Shown here one piece after another: positions 3,365 through 22,784 of a stretch of 64,000 nt of DNA (its first letter is position 1; each line of letters begins with the position of its first letter). Both the position numbers and the translations under genes were made by a program. The notes under the pieces were generated by a model. The model had not been told where the DNA came from and searched no databases. It saw only the letters and a program-made list of their open reading frames with translations. This DNA is from Phaeosaccion multiseriatum (lineage: Eukaryota > Protista > Ochrophyta, other classes). The DNA lies in NCBI GenBank assembly GCA_965112735.1, contig OZ218962.1, positions 2,852,001-2,916,000 on the forward strand. The letters run 5' to 3'.

Positions 3365-6356
3365 GGAAGGCGGAGCACCAACACGATCCATCAGATCGTC
3401 GCCGCACTCACAGATCATTTTTTTTCTTTTTTCTTTCTTCTCTCTATTCTTTCTTGTGCGGGTGGCCTTTCTCAACCCGCGATCGAACGAGGCTAGAGCA
3501 GAGAGGACGGGATGGAGCGAGCGGGGAGAGGCGGGGGGGGGGGAGAAGCCTCCAAGGGCGTGGTGAGTTTAGTACCTTGGAGCAGCGCGGGGCCAGCGGC
3601 TCTGAAAAGTGTGGCCTGCCTCTTCCCTAGCAAAGCTCTGTGGGGAGTGTGCAAGGAGGTGGATGAGGCCACCTCCCGCACTCTGGTCATCAACGCCGAC
3701 ATGCCTGAGTGTATGCAGCTTCGTATGCTAAGTTTGCTGAAGAACCAGAAGGAAGCGGACGCGAAGAAGGATGCTTTTTCATTCTGCTTAGAGCCGGCGG
3801 GTGCTGCTGAAGAGGTGGGGAAGTCGGGAATGATCCAGGAGAGGCAAGAGGAGGAGGAGGAAGAACAGGCAGTCGAGGCGGGCACGGGTTTCTTTCGCGT
3901 TGTGGCTGTGAAGCTCGGCCCTAGCCGCGGCTCTTACGGCGGCGTTGACATGATGCCCGCTGACAAGGCTCTCGCTAAACAAGCATTGGCGCTGCTGCCA
4001 GCATCAGTCAAGCGCGTTACTTTCTCCCACTTTTTCAATCAAGCCGGCGTGTCGCTACCAAGCACAGTCGAGGAGGTGGAGATGGGGCGGTACTTTAACC
4101 GCCCTCTGGAGCTGCCTGCTTCGCTCAAGAAGATCGTATTTGGCTGGAAGTTCAATTGGCACGTGGACCTTCCTTGCGGTGTGGAGGAGGTGGAGATGGG
4201 GTGCGACTTTAACCTCCCTCTGGAGCTGCCTGGCTCGCTCAAGAAGATCAAATTTGCTTTGTATTGCTCTGAATTCAATCAGCACTTGGACCTTCCTTGT
4301 GGTGTGGAGGAGGTGGAGATGGGGAAGTGCTTTAACCACCCTCTGGAGCTGCCTGTCTCGCTCAAGAAGATCGAATTTGGAAAGGAGTTCAATCAGCCCC
4401 TGATCCTTCCTTGTGGTGTGGAGGAGGTGGTGATGGGCAGGTGCTTTAACCACCCTCTGGAGCTGCCTGCCTCGCTCAAGAGGATCAAATTTAGACAGGA
4501 CTTCAACCAGCAGCTGGTTCTTCCTTTTGGTGTGGAGGAGGTGGAGATGGGGTATGCCTTTAACCTCCCTTTGGAGCTACCTGGCTCGCTCAAGAAGATC
4601 AAATTTGCGGATGGCTCTAAATTCAATCAGCCGTTGGTCCTTCCTCGTGGTGTGGAGGAGGTGGAGATGGGTTGGGACTTTAACCTCCCTCTGGAGCTGC
4701 CTATTTCGCTGAAGAAGATCACATTTGAGAATAAGTTCAATCAGCACGTGGACCTTCCTTGTGGTGTTGAGGAGTTAAAGATGGGTTGGGACTTTAACCT
4801 CCCTCTGGAGCTGCCTGCCTCGCTGAAGACGATCATGTTTCATACACAATCACGGTTCAATCAGCAATTGAACCTTCCTTGTGGTGTGGAGGAGGTGGAG
4901 ATGGGGGAGGATTTTAACCTCCCTCTGGAGCTGCCTGGCTCGATCAAGAGGATAAAATTTGGAGAGCACTTCAATCAGCAGCTGGTTCTTCCTTTTGGTG
5001 TGGAGGACGTGGAAATGGGGCAGTACTTTAACCTCCCTCTGGAGCTGCCTGCCTCGCTCAAGAAGATCAGATTTGGCCAGCGGTTTAATCAGCACGTGGA
5101 CCTTCCTTGTGGTGTGGAGGAGGTGGAAATGGGGTTTGCGTTTAACCTCCCTCTAGAGCTGCCTGCCTCGCTCAAGAAGATCACGGTTGACCGGTCGTCC
5201 ATCTTCAATCAGCCGTTGGTCCTTCCTTGCGGTGTGGAGGAGGTGGTACTGGGGCAGTTCTTCGATCAGCCTCTGAAGCTGCCTGCCTCACTCAAGAAGA
5301 TCACATTTGGCCTTTTTTTCAATCAGCAGCTGGTCCTTCCTTGCGGTGTGGAGGAGGTGGAGATGGGGCGTGACTTTAACCACCCTCTGAAGCTCCCTGC
5401 TTCTCTGCGGACTCTCGAGCTGGGACGGGAGTACACCTGCCCTTTGGAGAGCCTGCCTGCTAGCCTGAGGAGGCTCACAGTTGGGGAGGAATGCCAGCTG
5501 CCTGCAGATCTACCCGAGGGGCTTCGAGTGACTCGCTGGTGAGGAGGGTGATGGGACAGAGAACAACGCACAGCGCAGCACAGCTATCGTAGGCCCTGCC
5601 TCAAGAGGGAGGAGGTCTCAGCAGGAGGTGCGGCAACCGAGGGGGGACGAGCAGCGTAGCCAACAAGGAAGTAACTTGTCACCTGTCCGTCTTACAGTGC
5701 AGAGAGGAGCTGCGGGGAGGAGCGGGGGGAGTGCGAACACACATCCTCCACAGTTAAAGCTGCAGGGGAAGACCTGGGTTGGCTGTGCGGTAGGAAGGGC
5801 GGAAGAGGTGTGCGGGGGGGGGGGATGCTCAGGACAGAGGATGGAGAGGGCTGGCACCGATCGTTGGAAGAGAGGAAAACCCACTGTAGCGAAGGAAAAG
5901 GGTGCAAACACGCGAAAGCGACCCCCCCCGCAAATTAATTAACCTTAAACCCTTCACTCCAAAGAGTCACACCATGCTGCCTTGCCAGGGGCACCAAGTT
6001 TGAAATTTGATTTTCCTCCGCTGCCCGGCTGGTTTCTCCATAGAAGGACCCGTTCCGCGCTGCAGTCGCAGGCCCTTCCGCGGCGCCTATGAAGAAGGAA
6101 TGCTCCTTGCAGGATTGCTTGGTCTAAATCCTACACTCTTGCCCCCCTCCGGTGGTCTCTGCCTATACCTCTCTGTGACTCCCCTTAACTTCGCTGGCAC
6201 CATCTGGTACCATCTGCCTGCCCATCGCGTCTTGTGGCTGGGGAGTGGGGTGGGCCCCCCTATACACAGCCAGGAAGGGCCCGACTTGGCCAAGCCCACA
6301 CCCAACAGCACCCGTCCCTCCACTTCACGACTAGGTCCACCCGCCCAGCTATCTTT
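3365..6356 (+). repeat. Segmental direct duplication, copy 1 (copy 2 at ~12588-15356)
   Basis: Shared upstream motif GGAAGGCGGAGCACCAACAC...ATCGTCGCCGCACTCACAGATC, homologous N- and C-terminal coding parts, and a near-identical 3' flank ending at CCGCCCAGCTATCTTT in both copies. Confidence 0.93.
3512..5542 (+). CDS. Intronless FNIP-repeat (LRR-like) protein B, 676 aa, 24 repeats plus C-cap
   Basis: Uninterrupted ATG-TGA ORF with alternating units LPASLKKIxFGxxFNQxxx and LPCGVEEVEMGxxFNLPLE, matching the FNIP repeat pattern (FNxP.LP.SL..L.FG). Confidence 0.92.
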   Translation: MERAGRGGGGGEASKGVVSLVPWSSAGPAALKSVACLFPSKALWGVCKEVDEATSRTLVINADMPECMQLRMLSLLKNQKEADAKKDAFSFCLEPAGAAEEVGKSGMIQERQEEEEEEQAVEAGTGFFRVVAVKLGPSRGSYGGVDMMPADKALAKQALALLPASVKRVTFSHFFNQAGVSLPSTVEEVEMGRYFNRPLELPASLKKIVFGWKFNWHVDLPCGVEEVEMGCDFNLPLELPGSLKKIKFALYCSEFNQHLDLPCGVEEVEMGKCFNHPLELPVSLKKIEFGKEFNQPLILPCGVEEVVMGRCFNHPLELPASLKRIKFRQDFNQQLVLPFGVEEVEMGYAFNLPLELPGSLKKIKFADGSKFNQPLVLPRGVEEVEMGWDFNLPLELPISLKKITFENKFNQHVDLPCGVEELKMGWDFNLPLELPASLKTIMFHTQSRFNQQLNLPCGVEEVEMGEDFNLPLELPGSIKRIKFGEHFNQQLVLPFGVEDVEMGQYFNLPLELPASLKKIRFGQRFNQHVDLPCGVEEVEMGFAFNLPLELPASLKKITVDRSSIFNQPLVLPCGVEEVVLGQFFDQPLKLPASLKKITFGLFFNQQLVLPCGVEEVEMGRDFNHPLKLPASLRTLELGREYTCPLESLPASLRRLTVGEECQLPADLPEGLRVTRW

Positions 6357-7480
6357 GAGGGGTTTGCTCGCCTCTCCATCTCTCCTAGCTAGTGTGTGTG
6401 TGTGTGTGCCCTTGAATGACAAGGAACAAGAACCCCCCCCTCGACCCCTGACGTGCTATCGACCACATTCTCGAGCATGCTATCGGCCGCTAGCCGATAG
6501 CAGATAGCACGCCGGCTGACGCCGGCAATATGCCGGCAATAGCAGATAGCAGATAGCACGGAAGGGGACGCTGCCCTGCCTACCCATCGTCGGTCTGAAT
6601 AGGAGAAGACGTGGAGAACGAGGTCAAGGTTGTCCACAACATTATGAAGGAAATGGCGGGCAAGGTAGTAAGTAGCATTACGCATCACAGCCAGCCACTG
6701 CCGTGCTGCGGATGTGTGACCTGGTGGTGGTCCCGTGGACGCGGCGGGGAGAGTGGCCCAGATCGGGAGATACGAAGACTTGGCCGCTCGGGACGGCCTC
6801 CTGCGGGCGATGCTGCACGCCGCTGACCCTGCTGGGCCTCCGCACCACGGCAGAGCGGTAGCTAGGAGGGTGAAGAAGGGGAAGGCCGCTGGGGCGAGTG
6901 GCTGTGCGCCAAGCAACTCCGGGCCAAACTCCAACTCCTCAAGTCACACCGTGCGTTTCACCCCTCGTTTGAGCCGTCACCGGAGCTGAGTGGCCTCTGG
7001 CCGAGAATAGGCGCCCCACAACCAGGACGGCGGGGGCGCGATTCCTCATGAGAAGAGACGGATGGCCTCAACCACGGCGGTCGCTCGCGGAGACTGGCCG
7101 AGGCAGGAGGCAGGAAACGCACGTCCCAGGCAGGTGATGAACGGAGGGAACGAATCCCGCGCTATATTCAGTCCTTCAGTGGATCAAACGCGACGCCCAA
7201 TGGTGCTTGCGCATGAGGCAGCACAGAGGCACGGAGAGGCAGAGAGCGAGAGTGTCAAGAGCGAGCGCAGCGAACGCGACGAAACGAGAAGCAACGCCTT
7301 CTTCCTCCCTGCGGAGAGAAGCTGTGGCGCAACTCCTCCCCTGCCGCGCAGAAGACTAAGAGGGTTCGCTCTTTGAAGTTTCAGTTTCAGTTGCGACAAG
7401 GACGTTACAGAAAAAATTCCTCGGCTCGCCCACATTTTTTCTTTCCTTTCCCTCATTCATTTCTTTCCTAGCTGGAAAGG

Positions 7481-10305
7481 ATGTCTTTGCCTGATGCTAT
7501 AGCGGCCGCAGAGGCCGTTGTGCTGCAGCTCAAGCAAGAGATTGAGGATGCGTTCCCGTCAAGATGCGCCATAACGTCGAGCGATTGCGCAGCGTCCCAC
7601 AATGACGCTTGCCAGAGCACCAGGAGCGGGGCAACTTGCGAGACAGAGGAGGTGCTCGACGAGTGCGAGGAGGAGTCTTGCGGGTGAGCAGGGAGTGAGC
7701 ACACCTCATCACCGCGCCGAGACTTCCCAGCGAAAGCTTGTCCCTCACTCTGCTGCCCTCTGCTGACCATCTGCGTGGCTGAGCGACGCAGGTATCTCGT
7801 AGATAAAACGCTGAGCGTGGTGAGGATCCCCGCGGCTCTAGCTGATGGAGACAGCGGAAACCCCACCGACGCAAGTGTAATAGAAGCTGCATGCTTCTCT
7901 GGGCTTGTCGAAGGTACTGAGAAGGGGGAGGGGCAGGGCACGCAGCAGCCAGAAGTCCAGCTTCCCCCCCTCAACAATATACTCTCTCCCTCTCCTTTCC
8001 TGTTCAGACTCTTTGAAGTCTGCTTACGACGAAAACAAGGAGGCATACGGACTTGAATCAGCCTACTTTGGAAGCTGGAGCGGTCTTCTGAGGTACTTTC
8101 CTGGCGTCGCTCAGGAGGAATGCGGCTCGTACGACCCGCGGGTAAGGTACGTGGCTACTACGCACTCGCTCGTCATGCACCTCGCTTAGCTATCCGCTCT
8201 TCTAGGCGAGGATGGTGTGGTGACGGCTTCTGGCCTCTTGGCTCTCCCGGTCCTGTCCGCGTCGGTCTCTGTACGCAGGCCCTGGTTCATTGGAGCTAGT
8301 AGTGGGCCCAAGGATGTCGTCATCATCCTCGATACTTCGGGAAGCATGGGCGACGGCAAGATGGAGCTGGCCATTGAAGCGGTGCAGACGGTGCTCACCG
8401 GCATGACCTTCGACCACTACGTCAACGTCGTCGCTTTCGACTCCTCGGCAGAGGTGCTCAGCCTCAACAGTAACTCGCTGGTGCAGGTACTGGGGTTGTC
8501 TATCTGGACAGCTCCTCCTCTCGCTCCCTCTTTGAATCGTTTGTTTTCACAATCTGCGCGTTGCGTGCCCCCTCTCGCTCTTGTTCGTACTGCCCAGGCC
8601 ACGGAAGACAACCTGCTTGCTCTGTCCGAGCTCGTCGGAGATCTGTCTCCCAGCGGCGGGACGAACTTCTATGACGGTGAGAAAAGGCAGGCCCTGAAGA
8701 TGCTCTCTGAGAATCTTGTCTTGTTGCTTCTGTACTAATGTAACGAGTCTCTGGTCGTCATCCCATCCCGTTCATGTACTCCACAACGCTCTGCGGCAGC
8801 CTTCGACACGGCTTTCGATCTTATTGAGAGGTGAGTTCAAGTCAAGCAAGCAGTAGGGCCGTTGAACATCAGATGTCCTGCTCTGGAGGCCAGGGTTACC
8901 GCATTCAGCTTAGCTTCTCACCTCACTTGCTTATTCTGCTTGCTTGCTTCGTTGGTGGCCACCATTGCTCTTCTTTCTTCTTTCCCTCGCCCTCCTTTCA
9001 CAGCTCCGTCTCTAGCGGCAACACGGCGGGATGTCACACGACAGTACTTTTCCTCACTGATGGTAAGTCAAGGCCCGTTGGTGATGCATCGCTGCGCAAG
9101 TCGCACTGTGAACGGACATGACTCACGTACGAGCACCCACCACTCGCTCCCAACCCACCTGGCTGCTCCTGTCTGCTCTTGCTACCGGCTTCAGGTGAAA
9201 TCAGTGTTGGACCGCTGGATCCGTTGGACACGACAGACCTCATCGAGACCAGAAACGCCAACATTGGGGCGGAGATCTTTACCTTCTCGTTCGGCGAGAA
9301 CGCAGACCAGGACACCACACAGACGATAGCCTGTGAGACGGACGGGGTCTACCGTCATGTCAGCGACACTGACGATCTCACGGGGGCAATGGCGTCTTAC
9401 TACCAGCTCTACGCCGTCGGGAGTGGAAACAGCAGCTCACAAAACGTCACAACCTGGACAGAGCCCTACGTCTTCGACACGGGCGGCCATTTAGGCACTA
9501 CTTGCGCGTCGTCCGTGTACGACCACAGCACCAGGTAGGATAGCGGATAGGCAGGCCCGGTCCCTCGTTGAGGCCGGTCTCCCTCATCCGCCCCTTGCTC
9601 TGCGCGTCGTCTCTCTCCTCTCCGCAGCCCCTCCACCTTTCTGGGGGTGGTGGCAGTGGACTTTAAGCTGTCGACCTTCACAGACCTCAACGTCGAGTAC
9701 AGTGTCGTCTTGGACCAGCTCGTCGCAGAGTCCAGCACGTGCCCAGCCTTCGAGCTGTCTGAGTGCGACAAGCAGGCCTACAGAGCCTCCATCTCCGACG
9801 TCAGCGTGTGCGATGGCCAATGCGAGTCCACTCAGGTTAGTCTTTGGGGAGTCGACGGAGGTTAGGCGAAGTCTGTGTGTTGTGTCCTCCCCTCCAACCG
9901 CACGAAAGGGCTGATTCCCGTCCCTACTCTGCCCCTCTCCCCGCTACAGGACCTCACTCCCGAAGACTGCATGCCCGCCGAGGAGTACCCAGCGACGCTA
10001 TGGACCAACACGGACGCCTCTGATTGGTCATATGTGGAGCGGGCGTGTTGCGACACGAGTTCCACAGCTGCGGAAGTGAGCGAGCAGCAGACCTGCTTCG
10101 AGAGCGGGCTCGGGTCCGTCTTGTCCTCAGGAGCGATTGCTGGGATTGTTGCCGGTTGCTTCGTGTTGCTTGCGTGCAGCATTATCCGCTGTGCCTGGCG
10201 AGACAGCAATAAAAGGAAGGTGATGGGTTCTGGAGGAGGAGTCCACCAGCCGGCACAAATGCCGCAGCCGAAACAGCCGGTGCCGCTTCAACAGCCACAC
10301 ATGAT

Positions 10306-10337
<32 letters not shown>

Positions 10338-10576
10338 TCGTGCAACAGCCGCAATACATGCAGCCGCAGCCGCAAGTCGTGTTGATGCAGCAACCGATGC
10401 AGCAGGCGATGCAGCAGCCGATGCAACAGCCGATGCAGCAACCGATGCAGCAACCAATGGGCAGTCCCGTCGGCACAGGGTACGTAGTGAGCTCATCCCC
10501 ACAGGGTCCTCCTGCCTATGCGGCCGTTCCTCAGCAGCAGCAGCATGATTCAGCACCGCCCTCATACCAGCCCTAA
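7481..10576 (+). CDS. Alpha2delta/CACHD1-like protein: VWA_N/Cache + VWA, single TM helix, Gln-rich cytoplasmic tail
   Basis: GT-AG exons at ~7481-7683, 7792-7913, 8008-8146, 8279-8486, 8598-8676, 8800-8830, 9004-9062, 9195-9534, 9628-9835 and 9950-10576 join in frame. Motifs: YFGSWSGLLRYFP, YDPRVRPWF, PKDVVIILDTSGSM (MIDAS), GGTN, LFLTDG, IACET, WTEPY, LGVVAVD; TM GAIAGIVAGCFVLLACSII. The true 5' end is uncertain because an acceptor-like site lies at 7469-7471. Confidence 0.88.
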
Positions 10577-10659
10577 CAAGTGACGTATCGATGATGAGAG
10601 CGAGAGCCCGGAAAGCCTTTGGAGTAGTAGTAGCGTACAAACATATATAATTCTTCATT

Positions 10660-10688
10660 TTATATATATATATATATATATATACATA
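10660..10688. repeat. (TA)n microsatellite between convergent 3' ends
   Basis: Directly visible. Confidence 0.9.
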
Positions 10689-10720
10689 CACTGTTGTACG
10701 GATGTGGGCGACCTTAACCC

Positions 10721-11692
10721 CTAACTTGTTGCGTAGTAAATGGCGACATAGACCAGCAGGAAGATCGAGAAGGAGTTATTCCCCTTCTTTTCTGTGCCTT
10801 TCATCTCTGCAGCGATATCGTTCACCCCCGAGGCATTGACCTTCATACGCTCCTCCATCGCCTTGAGCTTGCCCGTGGGCGTGGCTGGCCCGTGGCACTG
10901 CTTGTCTAAAATTGCCACCCGCCGCTGCCCCTTAAAGCTGCTGAAGACTCGACACATGCACCTGGTGGCGGAGAGGGGGAGACAGAGAGACAGCCAGAGA
11001 GAGACAGAGAGAGACAGAGAGAGAGAGAGATTCACGTAACATAAGAGTCAGGTTTTATGGAGTGGGACGGCCTCACGAGGTCGCACACTCGCACGCAGCT
11101 TGGAGGCCGCGTACTCGGAGCACCGCACCTGAATGTCGCGCAGCACCATGAGCACATCCTGGTGCCCTTCCTTCAGGGCGAGGAGCATGTCCCTCGTTTG
11201 CTTGTCCACGTCCACGTGCAAGTAGTTGCCCACCCCAAGCTGCGGCAGCCGCTCAAAGCCCTACATGCTTTCGCGAGTGGAGGCCGGGCCTCCCCGTCAG
11301 GTGTGTCAGATCTCGAGTCGAAGACATCCATGCTGCTGCTGGTGCTGATGGTGGTGGTGGTGGTGGTGTTGCGTCCCTGGACGGAGTACTCCAGCGGTAG
11401 TAGCGGGGGGGAGGACGAGGACGGGGGCGGGGAAGAGAAGCCGCTCCTGGTGGCATACGCCTCCTCTCCTCCCCCCACTCCTCCTCCTGCCCACTCTGAT
11501 TCTCGAGCGTTACCACCTCTGGCACCACCTCCAACCCTTCCCTGACCCCCGGACACGCCCGTAGTGGAGAGCATGAGGATCCTCATGGTCAGCTTCACGA
11601 GGGTCTCTGGGACGAGATGGTCGCCTCGTTGTACCACCACCCCGTTCACCCCGCAGCTCCGTAGCTCAGCGTCTTGCTCGTGTTGGGTATCG

Positions 11693-11756
<64 letters not shown>

Positions 11757-12560
11757 AAGGAGATGGGGGGGGGACTAGCAGATAGATGTGGGCCTGGTCG
11801 TTTCTGTTATGCCGCAGAAACCGCGCCATCTCCTTGCCCACAAAGTACGGACTCGTGTGCTGGGGCTCCGAACACCAGCAGACAGACGACGACGACGGCA
11901 ACGTCGACGACGACGACGACGAGGAGGAGGAGAAAGGTCCAGCAGTCTTCCCCCTCTGCTGCTCCTGCTCATGTCCAGCGCAACTACGACTTGCATCTCC
12001 CTTCTGCCAGTGATGGTGCCAGTGATGGTGCCAGTGGTATCGATGAACACGACATCGTACTGAGCCCTGAGTGTGGTGCCTAGCCCATCACCCGGGCTTG
12101 CCCCTCCCCGGCGAACGTCGAACACAAGGGGGGTAGAAGCGGGCACCATGCGTGCTCCACAAAGTCCGAGTGCCTCTCCCACACCCGCCACTGCCCTCCT
12201 TGATGGTAGAGCACTGGGGCCGCAAGCAGGGGCGATCACGACCAGGACACGAATGGCCTTTACTTGCACCGCGGGTGGCGGTGCCGGAGTGGGCAGCATG
12301 GGGGGAGCACGTGCCATGCCTCTCCCCCTGCCTCGCCCGCACTGCCTCCCTCGGTCGTCGCATCATCAGAATGGCCCCACTGCCTCTTCGTCTTCTTCGC
12401 CCCGCTCCCACCGGCACCGCTTCCGTCCGTTGTGGTAGCAATTGAGGACGAAGAACTCCTTCTCGCCTCCTCTTCCTTCTTCTGTTGCCCCTTCGCCTTC
12501 TTCCCCCCCGACCACTGGACCCTCCTCCCCTTGCCTCTTCCCTCAGTCTTGTCATTTGGG
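10721..12560 (-). pseudogene. Degenerate response-regulator receiver-like gene fused to an FNIP gene A-type linker
   Basis: Receiver-like elements occur in order across two frames: IRVLVV, QYDVVFID, GKEMARFLR, AHIYLLV, ELRSCGVNGVVVQ, PETLVKLTMRIL. At least three frame breaks. 12370-12560 is homologous to 2870-3045. Confidence 0.45.
11696..11755. repeat. (GCA)n trinucleotide tract (~20 units)
   Basis: Directly visible; reads as poly-Ala on the minus strand. Confidence 0.95.
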
Positions 12561-12587
12561 CAGCCTTTTGTGCTTCTTCCATATGCC

Positions 12588-15356
12588 GGGAAGGCGGAGC
12601 ACCAACACCCACGACATCGTCGCCGCACTCACAGATCTTTGTTTGGGTGACGATCGCGTGACCTTCCATCTATCAACTATCTCCTAAAATTCACACCGAA
12701 ACGAGCCAGACCGGAATGGAGCGAGCGGCGAAAGGCGGGGGGGAAGAAGTATCCAAGGGCGTAACTAGGTTAGTACCTTGGAGCAGCGCGGGGCCAGCGG
12801 CTCTGAGAAGTGTGGCCTGCCTCATCTCGAACAAAGCTCTGTGGGGAGTGTGTAAGGATGTGGATGAGGTCACCTCCCGCACTCTGGTGATCAGCACCGA
12901 CATGCCTGAGTGTGTGCAGCTTCGTATGCTAAGCTTGCTGAAGAACCAGAAGGAAGCGGACGCGAGGAAGGTTGCTTTGTCATTCTCCGTAGAGCCTGCG
13001 GGTGGTGCTGAAGAGGTGGGGAAGTCGGGAATGATCCAGGAGAGGCAAGAGGAGGAAGACGAAGAGCAGGCAGTCGAGGCGGGCAGGGGTTTCTTTCGCG
13101 TCGTGGCTGTGAAGCTCGGTCGTAGCCTCCCCCCCTACCTTGACGTGACAACGGCGTTTATCGAAAGTACGACTCCTAACACCGCTGAGGACAAGGCTCT
13201 CGCTAGAAAAGCATTGGCGCTGCTGCCAGCATCGGTCAAGCGCCTTATTTTCTCCGACAGTTTCAATCAAGCCGTGTCGGTACTAAGCACAGTCGAGGAG
13301 GTGGAGATGGGGTGTCACTTTGACTCCCCCCTGGACCTGCCTGCCTCGCTCCAGAAGATCAGACTGGGCCAGAAGTTCAATCAGCAGCTGCTCCTTCCTT
13401 GTGGCGTGGAGGAGGTGATAGTGGGGGGTGACTTTAACCTCCCTCTGGAGCTGCCTGCTTCAGTGAAGAGGATCATATTTGTTGGGAGCTCGAACAAGTT
13501 CAATCAGCCCCTGATCCTCCCTTGCGGTGTGGAGGAGGTGGGGATGGGGAATGGCTTCAACCTCCCTCTGGAGCTGCCTGCCTCGCTCAAGAAGATCAGA
13601 TTTGGCTTCACCTCTACGTTCAATCAGCACATTGACCTTCCTTGTGGTGTGGAGGAGGTGGACATGGGGTGTGGGTTTAACCTCCCTCTGGAGCTGCCTG
13701 CCTCGCTCAAGAAGATCAGATTTGGGTATGACTCACACTTCAATCAGCACTTGGACCTTCCTTTTGGTGTGGAGGAGGTGGAGATGGGGTTTCACTTCAA
13801 CCTCCCTCTGGAGCTGCCTGCCTCGCTCAAGAAGATCACATTGGGACATATGTTCAATCATCACGTGGACCTTCCTTGTGGTGTGGAGGAGGTGGAGATG
13901 GATTGGGTCTTTAACCTCCCTCTAGAGCTGCCTGCCTCGCTCAAGAAGATCACATTCGGATATATGTTCAATCATCACGTGGACCTTCCTTGTGGTTTGG
14001 AGGAGGTGGTGATGGGGAAGTGCTTTAACCTCCCTCTGTCCCTGCCTTCCTCGCTCAAGAAGATCGAATTTTGTGAGTACTCACGGTTCAATCAGCAATT
14101 GGACCTTCCTTGTGGTGTGGAGGAGGTGGAAATGGGGTATGACTTTAACCTCCCTCTGGAGTTGCCTGCCTCACTCAAGAAGATCAAATTTGCAGGCTGG
14201 TTCAATCAGCACTTGGTTCTTCCTTGTGGTGTGGAGGAGGTGGAGATGGGGTTTCACTTTAACCGCCCTCTAGAGCTGCCTGCCTCGCTCAAGAAGATCA
14301 AATTTGATATGGTCTCGAATTTTCATCAGCTTTTGGTCCTTCCTTGCGGCGTGGAGGAGGTGGTGATGGGACAGTCCTTCAACCTCCCTCTGGACCTCCC
14401 TGCTTCTCTGCGGACTCTCGAGCTGGGACGGGAGTACACCTGCCCTTTCGAGAGCCTACCTGCTGGCCTGAGGAGGCTCACAGTTGGGGAGGAATACCAG
14501 CTGCCTGCAGATCTACCCGAGGGGCTGGAGGTGACTCGCTGCTGAGGAGGGCGATGGGACAGAGGACAACAACGCACAGCGCAGCACAGCTATCGTAGGC
14601 CCTGCCTCAAGAGGGAGGAGGTCTCAGCAGGAGGTGCGGCAACCGAGGGGGGACGAGCAGCGTAGCCAACAAGGGAGTCACTTGTCACCTGTCCGTCTTA
14701 CAGTGCAGAGAGGGGCTGCGGGGAGGAGCGGGGGGAGTGCGAACACACATCCTCCACAGTTAAAGCTGCAGGGGAAGACCTGGGTTGGCTGTGCGGTAGG
14801 AAGGGCGGAAGAGGTGTGCGGGGGGGGGGGATGCTCAGGACAGAGGATGGAGAGGGCTGGCACCGATCGTTGGAAGAGAGGAAAACCCACTGTAGCGAAG
14901 GAAAAGGGTGCAAACACGCGAAAGCGACCCCCCCCGCAAATTAATCAACCTTAAACCCTTCACTCCAAAGAGTCACACCATGCTGCCTTGCCAGGGGCAC
15001 CAAGTTTGAAATTTGATTTTCCTCCGCTGCCCGGCTGGTTTCTCCATAGAAGGACCCGTTCCGCGTGCAGTCGCAGGCCCTTCCGCGGCGTCTATGAAGA
15101 ACGAATGCTCCTTGCAGGATTGCTTGGTCTAAATCCTACACTCTTGCCCCCCTCCGGTGGTCTCTGCCTATACCCCTCTGTGACTCCCCTTAACTTCGCT
15201 GGGACCATCTGGTACCATCTGTCTGCCCTCGCGTCTTGTGGCTGGGGAGTGGCGTGGGCCCCCCTGGCTGTACGAAGGGCCTGACTTGGCCAAGCCCAAA
15301 CCCAACAGCACCCGTCCCTCCACTTCACGACTAGGTCCACCCGCCCAGCTATCTTT
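12588..15356 (+). repeat. Segmental direct duplication, copy 2
   Basis: See copy 1 at 3365-6356. Confidence 0.93.
12716..14545 (+). CDS. Intronless FNIP-repeat protein C, 609 aa, 20 repeats plus C-cap
   Basis: Uninterrupted ORF. Paralogue of B with the same N-terminus and C-cap (LPASLRTLELGREYTCP...LPADLPEGL.VTR). Confidence 0.92.
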   Translation: MERAAKGGGEEVSKGVTRLVPWSSAGPAALRSVACLISNKALWGVCKDVDEVTSRTLVISTDMPECVQLRMLSLLKNQKEADARKVALSFSVEPAGGAEEVGKSGMIQERQEEEDEEQAVEAGRGFFRVVAVKLGRSLPPYLDVTTAFIESTTPNTAEDKALARKALALLPASVKRLIFSDSFNQAVSVLSTVEEVEMGCHFDSPLDLPASLQKIRLGQKFNQQLLLPCGVEEVIVGGDFNLPLELPASVKRIIFVGSSNKFNQPLILPCGVEEVGMGNGFNLPLELPASLKKIRFGFTSTFNQHIDLPCGVEEVDMGCGFNLPLELPASLKKIRFGYDSHFNQHLDLPFGVEEVEMGFHFNLPLELPASLKKITLGHMFNHHVDLPCGVEEVEMDWVFNLPLELPASLKKITFGYMFNHHVDLPCGLEEVVMGKCFNLPLSLPSSLKKIEFCEYSRFNQQLDLPCGVEEVEMGYDFNLPLELPASLKKIKFAGWFNQHLVLPCGVEEVEMGFHFNRPLELPASLKKIKFDMVSNFHQLLVLPCGVEEVVMGQSFNLPLDLPASLRTLELGREYTCPFESLPAGLRRLTVGEEYQLPADLPEGLEVTRC

Positions 15357-15389
15357 CTCTTTCTCCGACCTCGCATCATCCCCTCATGT

Positions 15390-16627
15390 AAGCGAGTCAC
15401 ATCAAGCCCCTCGGGTAGATCTGCAGGCAGCTGGTAGTCCTCCCCAACCGTAACCTTCGTGAGGCCAGCAGCCAGGTAGGCTCTCCAAAGGGCAGGTGTA
15501 ACTCCACCCCAGCTCGAGAGTCCGCAGAGAAGCAGGCAAGCTCAGAGGGAAGTCACAGTCACGCCCCATCACCACCTCCTCCACTCCACAAGGAAGGAAC
15601 GCGTGCTGATTGAAGTGGTTCACGAATATCATCTTCGTCAGGAAGGCAGCTCCAATTCCTCTTCCTCTCCTCTCCCATCTCCACACTATAAGGAAGAGTC
15701 ACGTGCTGATTGAAATTGTGCCAAATTTGATCTTCTTCAGAGAGAGGAAGGTCCAGAGGGAGGTCAAAGTCACGCCCTATCTGCACCTCCTCCACACCGC
15801 AAGGAAGGACCAAGAGCTGATTGAACTTCCTGCCAAGTCTGATCTTCTTGCGTGAGGCAGGCAGGTCCAGAGGAAGGTTAAACGCATGCCCCGTCTGCAG
15901 GTCCTCAACACCACAAGGAGCGTTCACGTGCTGATTGAAATGCTTGCTAGATTTTGATCTTCTTCAGCGAGGCACGCAGTTCCAGACTGAGGATAAAGCA
16001 ATGCCGTATCTCCACCCCCTCCACACCACAAGGAAGGGACCAGTGCTGGTCGAATAGGGAGTCTTTACCAAATCTGATCCTCTTCAGCGAGGCAGACCGG
16101 TCCAGAGGGACGTTAAACTCCTGCCCCATCACCACCCCTTCCACACCGCAGGGACCAAGTGTTGGTCTAATAGGAGTTTCCACAAAATCTGAGCTTCTTC
16201 ATGGAGGCAGGCAGGTCCAGAGGGAGGTCGACCTCCTCCCCCTCTCCCCTCCTCCCCTTTCCCTCTCCTTCCCCCCTCCTCTCTTTCTCCCAATACTTCC
16301 ATAACTACTTTGCAGTGTCCTGCGTATCCGCATAGGTTGTGAGGCCAAAGCTTCACAACCACCTCAGTACAGGTTCTTCCCGGGGCTGCCTTTTCACAGG
16401 CTGGCCGTGCTTCTCTTCCTGCTTTGCCCCACCCATGCCTCCCGGCCTTCCAGAGCCCCCTCCATAACAAAGCAGTAGAACCCGTAGCATCCTTCAGGGA
16501 AGATGCTGCGCAAACACCGCTCCTCTTCTGCCCTCTGCTGCCGTAGCATACTCAGCAAACGAAGCTGCACACGCCAGGATGTTGATGTTCCCTCAGGGTG
16601 GGTTGCGTTGATCATATCAGATGGCAC
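15390..16627 (-). pseudogene. FNIP-repeat pseudogene D
   Basis: Short broken ORFs (15402-15686, 15559-15927, 15947-16183, 16394-16627) carry FNIP units, an N-terminal remnant VQLRLLSMLRQQ and the C-cap LRTLELGWSYTCPLESLP. Many frameshifts. Confidence 0.85.
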
Positions 16628-17029
16628 TCGATGGCTCGACGAGTGCAGAACGATCCCCCGTCCGTGATAAAGAAGAAGTGAGGGAGAGCGTGGAAGAGGC
16701 GATATGATGCTGTGGGTGTATATAGAGCCCTCGCATCTGCAGGGAAGTTATACGTTCTCTCATTAAAAGCTAGCGAACCCAAAGAGGGAAGCACCACGCA
16801 CGCGCTGCAGGAACGGAAACGGAGATGAGTTGCCTGTTCACACACACCAACCTTGAAACTGATCATTAGGAGCAGTAGCAGCAACAGCAGCAGACATCCT
16901 GGGACGACCTTCATTCCACACGACGCATCCACATACGGCTGTTCTCTGCTGCTGCGGCTTCCATCTACTTTGCAGACGAGCAAAGACAGTACAGGCAGCC
17001 GCGCTTTGCTACGACTGCGCTACCCAACC

Positions 17030-22784
<5,755 letters not shown>

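Follow-up and report, generated by a model that had tools for sequence, protein, structure and literature searches.

How can two repeat genes share a nearly identical 3' flank and have unrelated repeat arrays next to it? This question is raised by genes B and C, two FNIP/LRR genes in a window of 64,000 nucleotides (the whole stretch of DNA analysed) from the ochrophyte alga Phaeosaccion multiseriatum. An earlier note on this DNA regarded the two genes as recent duplicates, in which the arrays were rewritten between constant ends in the manner of VLR or VSG cassettes, and gave homogenisation of the flanks by conversion as an alternative. Our analysis leads to a different view. B and C are probably old paralogues, and C probably a young chimera produced by homology-driven exchange of blocks with three paralogues.

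Layout of the locus and the FNIP family

The genes and blocks discussed here are listed in Table 1. Genes A and B are arranged head-to-head. A is truncated; BLAST homology of A extends down to 774, and a three-frame reading of 700-1300 showed that the homologous tail at 774-1206 is frameshifted. D carries several frameshifts, has one lesion in common with the tail of A, and is 73-76% identical to A, B and C (BLAST). Block 1 of C spans a truncated open frame on the minus strand, called X, the DNA between the genes, and 190 nt at the 5' end of the CDS. Genes G and E lie on the opposite strand, 90-100 kb from C, and the family cluster is located at C13:2.85-3.00 Mb.

Table 1. Features of the B/C locus (positions within the window)
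Feature	Positions	Strand	Basis or remark
Gene A, FNIP-repeat ORF, 572 aa	1206-2924	-	Pfam PF05725, E=1.6e-64
Gene B, intact intronless FNIP/LRR gene, 676 aa, 24 half-repeats	3512-5542	+	
Shared 3' block at gene B, with the last repeat unit, the C-terminal cap and 3' flank (810 nt)	5393-6356	+	
C block 1, close match to the G locus	11238-12906	+	
Gene C, intact intronless chimeric FNIP/LRR gene, 609 aa, 20 half-repeats	12716-14545	+	
Start of the mixed G/E zone in C	12907-13005	+	zone extends to about 13130
C block 2, near-copy of gene E: end of N-terminal region, half-repeats 1 to 8.5	13006-13790	+	
C orphan segment (old private sequence) with half-repeats 9b to 19	13791-14395	+	
C block 3, close match to the 3' block of B: last unit, cap, 3' flank	14396-15356	+	
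D, decayed FNIP pseudogene, convergent with C	15391-16700	-	three-frame reading, BLAST

B, C and A score 272, 187 and 214 bits against Pfam FNIP (PF05725), for which the cut-off is 21, and about 1900 candidate repeat units were found across the genome. The AlphaFold model of C has a pLDDT of 72, and its solenoid comprises residues 176-609 with a block pLDDT of 72-93. Foldseek with this predicted model gave 6nyr, the circular LRR protein CroV588, as the best PDB match (E=6e-20), and 7zal was also matched (E=5e-6). Both entries are FNIP, or FGxxFN, LRR proteins, 7zal being the second CroV FNIP protein (PMC9525666), and 121 FNIP proteins have been reported from the kelp Saccharina japonica (PMC4421812). 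Thus, C and its relatives resemble the known FNIP proteins in PF05725 scores far above cut-off, in a predicted solenoid nearest to CroV588 and in the existence of a large family in an alga related to the brown algae; an rbcL search placed the genome among the ochrophytes. They differ in that the closest database proteins are only 31-34% identical in sequence and that neither Pfam nor a word search gave any match to the N-terminal region (about 180 aa). FNIP proteins of the Dictyostelium and giant-virus type carry an F-box at the N-terminus; a Pfam scan (E up to 10) of the N-terminal 183-194 aa detected none, although the model is of low confidence there and a divergent F-box is possible. The model suggests that the fold of C is an LRR-type beta-solenoid like that of the solved CroV FNIP proteins. 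Proteins of the B/C type are predicted to be binding proteins with a solenoid fold, and each repeat has a few codons that are hypervariable.

B and C share a 3' block

Comparison in 100-nt windows, which the earlier note had proposed as a check, gave 96-100% identity between 5550-6200 and 14553-15200, and the two 3' flanks agree at 98-99% of positions for about 650 nt. The flanks had been said to differ at about ten positions by eye; we count 8 mismatches between 14568-15210 and its B counterpart. The whole shared block has 20 mismatches in 953 aligned nt (96.9-98.3% identity). Near-identity sets in 18 nt after the start of the last repeat unit and ends abruptly at 6356/15356, the latter position being 34 nt from the D stop.

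It is only this 3' flank that is nearly identical, although the earlier note had spoken of flanks in the plural; on the 5' side, the non-coding DNA of the two genes is 50-69% alike and aligns with large gaps. In the N-terminal coding part, identity between B and C is about 90-93% in single windows and 85% when gaps are counted. B is 83-85% identical to E, F and G in this part, so C is no nearer to B than these are.

In the arrays, the half-repeat counts of the earlier note (24 in B, 20 in C) were right, and so was its statement that the variable slots have no colinear match. The B x C matrix of repeat-unit identity has no diagonal; interior double units are 64-87% identical, with a mean of 0.77 both within and between the genes. 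In the colinear register of B and C, identity is about 92% at scaffold codons against a background of 91.5%, and about 57% at variable codons against 59%. A tree of repeat units, another check that had been proposed, revealed positional pairing of B with C only for the first and last double unit. Hypermutation limited to variable codons was considered as a cause of the difference between the arrays and was rejected, because the scaffold codons are also at background and the tract shared by C and E keeps its variable slots.

Given 5' flanks without relation to one another and N-terminal parts no closer than those of B to E, F and G, B and C as wholes are not recent whole-gene duplicates. It could still be argued that a recently duplicated gene had its array rewritten between constant ends by a fast VLR- or VSG-like cassette process. 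Such a process would explain the 98-99% identical 3' flank beside unrelated arrays, and near-identical ends with unrelated arrays are also found in G/E and in a second cluster on contig 1. In addition, C holds an array block taken from, or common to, E. However, the 5' part of C groups with G and E and not with B, the scaffold codons of B and C are at background identity, and most units of B and the orphan units of C have no donor in the genome. Furthermore, both B and C have complete open frames, of 676 and 609 aa, unlike incomplete germline genes in which non-coding DNA separates the constant ends, and nothing found here supports programmed cassette assembly. We consider this explanation highly improbable, also in view of the E/F pair described below.

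Another explanation is that the genes are old and the 3' flank has been held at 98% by purifying selection on a UTR, a noncoding RNA or an opposite-strand gene. The block is non-coding by Pfam, and there are open frames of about 100 aa on both of its strands. On the other hand, Rfam and Pfam searches gave no match to the block, and from about 186 nt past the stop onward the flank occurs genome-wide only at B and C, being absent from the other members of the family. The flanks of E and F are 8-12% diverged. The identity of the B/C flank ends abruptly at one base and equals that of the other two C blocks, intergenic DNA included. Purifying selection thus has almost no likelihood as an explanation of the flank.

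Gene C is a mosaic of blocks that match three paralogues

A scan of C against its paralogues in 90-nt windows gave windows of 100% identity first to G, then to E and then to B. Block 1 has 18 mismatches in 1292 nt to C13:2954073-2955364 and 2 in 326 nt to the 5' end of G, and block 2 has 14 mismatches in 782 nt to E. The tract cores carry 14 mismatches in about 1590 nt (G), 6 in 650 nt (E, 13140-13790) and 7 in about 630 nt (B), so that the three divergences of 0.9%, 0.9% and 1.1% are indistinguishable. In a breakpoint test, 75 consecutive informative sites were G-like, and were followed by a mixed zone and then by an E-like run with a single exception. The max-chi-square value observed was reached in 0 of 2000 permutations. 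In the mixed zone, 16 sites are E-like and 9 are G-like; these are interleaved with each other and with private sites, and 7 sites fall in neither class. Half-units C1-C8 match E1-E8 at 94-100%, variable slots included, identity between C and E over half-repeats 1 to 8.5 is 98-100%, and C01-C04 are sisters of E01-E04 in the unit tree (support 81-100). C is therefore a mosaic, and its blocks have similar divergence. The sequence comparisons show donor-specific tracts from several paralogues with statistically supported breakpoints.

The left border of block 1 is abrupt, and both outer borders are near-identical to the last base. This is unexpected for simple short-tract conversion of a resident gene and fits either duplicative insertion or conversion to the homology edge. 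The X copy at C is truncated compared with the X copies at the G locus, which indicates that the C locus is the derived copy for block 1. The joins between the C blocks are at homologous, in-frame positions, which indicates that the process was homology-driven. Transposon-style capture of gene fragments was rejected for the same reason, and there are no terminal repeats around the block.

We propose that three blocks of C were copied from, or exchanged with, three paralogues within the time of about 1% divergence. The G-like block would have supplied upstream DNA and the 5' end, the E-like block the end of the N-terminal region and 8.5 half-repeats, and the B-like block the last unit with the cap and the 3' flank (810 nt). 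The 0.6-kb array stretch would be a remnant of an older resident gene. As for the repair mechanism, we infer one of three: gene conversion or homologous recombination between non-allelic copies, or a switch of template in the course of repair. Such exchange of blocks produces new combinations of repeats. The young 3' flank is an exchange tract, and a 98% identical flank beside a different array is the border of a block and gives no reason to think that arrays change or are rebuilt faster than flanks. The data thus favour homogenisation of the flank by conversion or exchange, the alternative that the earlier note had named, over recent duplication of the genes, since the near-identity of B and C is one block in a mosaic of three donors.

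It is possible, although we would hold it only tentatively, that the entire 4.1-kb C block arose when a single break was repaired from ectopic templates, with homology-guided, BIR- or SDSA-like switching of the template from G to E, to resident or unknown sequence, and to B. The equal divergence of the three tract cores is consistent with a single event, as are the abruptness of both outer borders, which is as at a duplication junction, the mixed G/E zone at the first switch and the fact that every join is in frame. However, the differences are few, so equal divergence cannot tell one event from three close ones. Moreover, the 0.6-kb orphan is old and has no donor in the assembly, which suggests that part of the C locus predates the event.

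Private arrays of B and C

The best genome-wide match is 83% for the C orphan and 82% for the B array. In a half-unit search of 277 kb of family loci, few units had a counterpart of at least 95%; in B they were only B5, B18 and B23, whose counterparts are in gene G. The C orphan has no exact match of 60 nt or more in the genome, and the same is true of most of the B array. A fine patchwork of sampled donors was considered for the orphan and was rejected by exact-match tiling. The B array and the distal half of the C array are thus private sequence and look old. The claim that arrays were rewritten by recombination therefore applies to half-repeats 1-8.5 of C, which are E-like, and does not extend to the B array or the distal C array.

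The control pair E/F

E and F are a true whole-gene duplicate pair, in which the array is colinear and has an equal number of units. They are diverged by 4.1% in the N-terminal part, 3.4% at scaffold codons, 10.7% at variable codons and 8-12% in the 3' flank. The array of E/F is thus stable in order and less diverged than the flank, contrary to what rewriting by cassettes would require. Because it remained colinear beside a flank diverged by 8-12%, arrays do not outrun their flanks, and the proposal that the coding array turns over faster than adjacent non-coding DNA is not supported. The three-donor chimera with an intact frame and this true duplicate pair stand side by side, and the pair provides a built-in standard for how fast arrays change.

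Among changed codons of E/F, 44 are non-synonymous and 6 synonymous at variable positions, compared with 19 and 14 in the scaffold. Part of this excess may reflect relaxed constraint, because F is frameshifted. Selection on variable codons would, on our preferred reading of block exchange among old paralogues, add to the diversity of the family. Clustered paralogues, exchange tracts and a non-synonymous excess at variable repeat codons occur together here, and by sequence this cluster looks like one of the resistance-gene type.

Short-read support for the structure of C

The assembly was checked against short-read (Logan) contigs, which collapse paralogues. Contigs of sample S1 (runs X1-X3) match the C-private positions 14002-14233 exactly, and one S1 contig covers 12936-13035 without any difference and carries the interleaved G/E pattern. 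A contig of the independent sample S2 covers 14661 to 15390 and joins the C flank to D. S1 and S2 belong to different studies, and both hold C-specific pieces or the junction of the C flank with D. At position 14946, the B letter and the C letter were both read at similar depth.

These contigs bear on the idea that C is an assembly artefact, in which reads of G, E and B were stitched into one chimeric consensus. The sequences of the family are strongly repetitive, the short-read contigs collapse paralogues so that all but one of the other letters in them equal a paralogue state, and no read spans the C block; among the short-read contigs listed, the junctions 13790 and 14396 are unbridged. Nevertheless, each block differs from its partner by about 1% and C has 0.6 kb of private sequence, and the exact S1 matches, the S2 junction of a B-like flank with D and the two letters at 14946 also speak against stitching. 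We therefore regard an artefact as a very remote explanation. In the short Logan contigs, which collapse paralogues, the same ends were never found around a different array, and none of the RNA runs contains the stretch. Two skip joints in these contigs, with 25-27 nt on either side, are compatible with other members of the family.

Comparison with known systems

Plant resistance genes form clusters whose LRR paralogues exchange sequence by unequal crossing-over and gene conversion, and their exposed LRR residues are hypervariable. The present cluster is similar in its clustered paralogues, mosaic tracts of 0.3-1.7 kb, several donors, non-synonymous excess and pseudogene neighbours. It differs in that the LRRs are of the FNIP class, without an NB-ARC or kinase module, and belong to an ochrophyte alga, in which a link to defence is conjectural; we infer any recognition role of these proteins in the same tentative sense. 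Mosaic antigen genes are formed by segmental gene conversion in trypanosome VSG and Plasmodium var genes, and VLR genes are assembled in lampreys. C is likewise built from segments of several paralogous donors, but its mosaicism is germline and on an evolutionary scale in a normal assembly, and neither an incomplete germline gene nor an expression site nor variation within a clone was seen. TAL-effector arrays of Xanthomonas have a nearly uniform repeat scaffold, a few hypervariable codons and conserved ends. The FNIP arrays resemble them in a scaffold that is near-uniform even at synonymous sites, in a few hypervariable codons per repeat, in conserved ends and in arrays that differ among paralogues, whereas the fold and organism are unrelated and the E/F duplicates keep the order of their array. 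In the brown alga Ectocarpus, LRR exon shuffling has been described in ROCO and NB-ARC-TPR genes (PMC3341825, PMC11378527). This is a related algal lineage in which repeat modules are recombined among candidate receptors. Unlike in P. multiseriatum, each repeat is an exon there; the genes here are intronless, and the blocks span repeat, N-terminal and intergenic DNA.

On our reading, the process at the B/C locus is of a known kind, non-allelic homologous recombination or gene conversion in an LRR cluster, and involves no new diversity-generating machine. This leaves no case here for a mechanism dedicated to generating diversity, and an identical flank beside a different array in this genome is to be read as a recombination border. 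C also offers a clean, datable example of the formation of a new gene in a large family of candidate recognition proteins from a little-studied algal lineage.

Ends of the exchanged tracts

The ends of exchanged tracts may not be randomly placed. A systematic swapping of modules in the germline of FNIP clusters, in which array blocks and end modules are exchanged with preferred breaks at array borders, so that new receptor arrays would form between shared ends much more often than by random conversion, seems improbable to us. What suggests it is that three tracts, B/C, G/E and G/F, begin exactly at the last repeat unit, and that in the second cluster, on contig 1, the 5' ends are 98-100% identical and the arrays are unrelated.

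FNIP-repeat genes of the interval

Four members of the large FNIP-repeat family (PF05725) are present in the window (G000:C13:2852001-2916000 of a 67 Mb genome in 22 contigs), and about 1900 candidate repeat units were found genome-wide. Three further close paralogues, G, E and F, came from a search with the N-terminal region. The proteins belong to the FNIP/FGxxFN leucine-rich-repeat (LRR) class, which is known from giant viruses, Dictyostelium and brown algae (PMC9525666, PMC4421812).

Features in the window and at paralogous loci (window positions unless a contig is named)
Feature	Position	Strand	Remarks
Gene A	1206-2924	minus	FNIP-repeat gene; frameshifted tail, 774-1206
Gene B	3512-5542	plus	FNIP-repeat gene, 676 aa
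VWA frame	8217-8735		unrelated exon-like open frame, von Willebrand factor A domain
Microsatellite	10963-11030		GA-rich
X at C	11238-12317	minus	truncated, interrupted; upstream of C
Gene C	12716-14545	plus	FNIP-repeat gene, 609 aa
D	about 15391-16700	minus	decayed FNIP pseudogene
Tandem repeats	17632-18204 and 18418-18737		shifted self-matches 87-96%; second array with period about 8 nt
X at G/E	C13:2949686-2950805 and 2954319-2955462		
Gene G	C13:2951522-2953804	minus	760 aa
Gene E	C13:2956179-2958503	minus	774 aa
Gene F (L041)	C12:8207-10700		close to contig start, beside simple repeats

All FNIP genes examined are single open frames, whereas HSP90 (G000:C2:1610489-1613230) is split into many exons; the family is intronless within an intron-rich genome. 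The frameshift has one and the same position in the tail of A and in D, and in both a repeat unit is followed by an identical out-of-frame reading, which implies either duplication of a broken copy or transfer of the lesion. The plastid rbcL shares 89-91% identity with its counterparts in Vaucheria, Chrysoparadoxa and brown algae, which makes the organism an ochrophyte (stramenopile) alga to which the protein database offers no close relative. The rbcL gene scores identically on two small contigs (G000:C18:88102-89019 and C21:22185-23102), so the plastid genome may be in the assembly twice.

In the AlphaFold model of C, the solenoid at residues 176-609 is confident and the N-terminal region is poorly predicted. 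Structurally, this predicted fold comes closest to the circular LRR protein CroV588; a second CroV FNIP protein matches too (PMC9525666). The scaffold of each repeat pair is almost uniform, synonymous sites included. The few hypervariable codons of a pair are positions 18-19 (with an optional insert), 15, and 4-6 of one half-unit.

C is a mosaic of three paralogues

Scanning C in 90-nt windows against all paralogues found revealed three near-perfect runs, each to another gene. Positions 11238-12564 and 12581-12906 correspond to the G locus, namely its upstream DNA and the 5' end of the gene (18 mismatches over 1292 nt and 2 over 326), 13006-13790 to E (14 in 782 nt; core, 6 in 650 nt), and 14396-15356 to B at 5393-6356 (20 in 953 nt). 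Along C, the sites that discriminate G from E are G-like 75 times in a row, pass through a mixed zone (12900-13130) and then run E-like with a single exception; the observed max-chi-square of this breakpoint was reached by 0 of 2000 permutations. Across half-units C1-C8, identity to E1-E8 is 94-100% even with the variable slots counted, and in a tree of 50 double units C01-C04 pair with E01-E04. The core divergence of the three tracts is indistinguishable (0.9%, 0.9% and 1.1%). B lies 9 kb from C in direct orientation, and G and E lie 90-100 kb off in inverted orientation.

The remaining 605 nt of C (13791-14395) had no match above 83% in a genome-wide search, and their exact-match profile resembles that of the B array. 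This marks the stretch as old and private. The B array is likewise private genome-wide, except for three units common to B and G.

B and C are old paralogues that share a young tract

The earlier note took B and C for recent duplicates whose repeat arrays had been rewritten faster than the adjacent non-coding DNA. Several of its observations hold. Between 5550/14553 and 6200/15200, identity of the 3' flanks per 100 nt is 96-100%, B and C have 24 and 20 half-repeats, and the matrix of B against C unit identities has no diagonal, the identity of units being 0.77 both between and within genes. With units aligned colinearly from either end, identity is about 92% for scaffold codons (91.5% in the background) and about 57% for variable codons (59% in the background). 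The maximum-likelihood phylogeny of the 50 double units agrees: positional grouping is confined to the first and last unit of each gene, and interior B units never appear as sisters of C units. The similarity of the flanks, however, is limited to the 3' side, as the 5' flanks are dissimilar. The N-terminal coding region of B is 85% identical to that of C and equally close to E, F and G (83-85%). Furthermore, the VWA exon lies between B and C, which are therefore not adjacent tandem copies.

A true duplicate behaves differently. F, on a different contig, copies E colinearly, and a 1-nt deletion breaks its frame. The two correspond over the whole gene with equal unit number. Their N-terminal parts have diverged by 4.1%, scaffold codons by 3.4%, variable codons by 10.7% and the 3' flanks by 8-12%. 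Array order is kept and the array on the whole is less diverged than its flank, contrary to the proposed faster turnover of coding arrays; only the variable codons outpace the rest, via point substitution. Changes in these codons are 44 non-synonymous versus 6 synonymous, and because F is frameshifted, relaxed constraint may account for part of this excess. Against this control, a flank only 1-2% diverged beside arrays with no trace of orthology means that B and C cannot be a duplicate pair with a turned-over array. The flank they have in common is a tract exchanged recently between two old paralogues.

Read support for C

Could C be an assembly chimera? We compared it with Logan short-read contigs from five runs of two samples from different studies, no RNA run among them. 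Contigs of sample S1 (runs X1-X3) match C-private pieces without difference at 14002-14233 and 12936-13035, the latter holding the interleaved G/E pattern. In the independent sample S2 (run X5), one contig crosses from the B-like flank into D (14661-15390). Position 14946 is read with both the B and the C letter, at similar depth. These results make an assembly chimera improbable rather than impossible. All but one of the other deviating letters equal a paralogue state, indicating that the contigs collapse paralogues. None of the short-read contigs listed bridges the junctions at 13790 and 14396; the sides of two joints that skip sequence are just 25-27 nt long, and these joints are compatible with other family members.

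Mechanism of exchange

The inner joins of C are all homologous and in-frame, and C is still an open gene, which points to homology-driven exchange. The route might be non-allelic gene conversion, non-allelic homologous recombination or template switching in break repair, and the blocks could stem from one multi-template event or three close events. At both outer ends the near-identity persists to the last base and then breaks off abruptly, which fits a duplicative copy or conversion reaching the edge of common homology. X, found alongside G and E, is a putative gene, an open frame of about 370-380 aa that is rich in proline and glycine and matches no Pfam family. Since X at C is truncated relative to both copies at the G locus, the C locus is the recipient for the G-like 5' block.

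The tracts of G/E, G/F and B/C all start at the last, atypical repeat unit. A plausible explanation, both for this and for the contig 1 cluster described next, would be that heteroduplex formation halts at the onset of the variable codons (59% identity), or that homogenised arrays are removed by selection.

Six tandem FNIP genes at G000:C1:6.32-6.42 Mb (L018-L023) repeat the B/C pattern of a common end and an unrelated array, but at the 5' end. Their 5' flanks and N-terminal coding regions are 98-100% identical, and their arrays are non-orthologous: lengths differ, every variable slot differs, and units in colinear register are as similar to each other as off-diagonal units or units within one gene.

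Relation to known systems

A literature search found no paper linking FNIP repeats with gene conversion. The evolutionary process at C is that known from clustered plant LRR genes and mosaic antigen genes. In a related lineage, the closest precedent reported comes from Ectocarpus, where LRR exons are shuffled (PMC3341825); that process operates on exons, unlike the exchange in the present FNIP genes.
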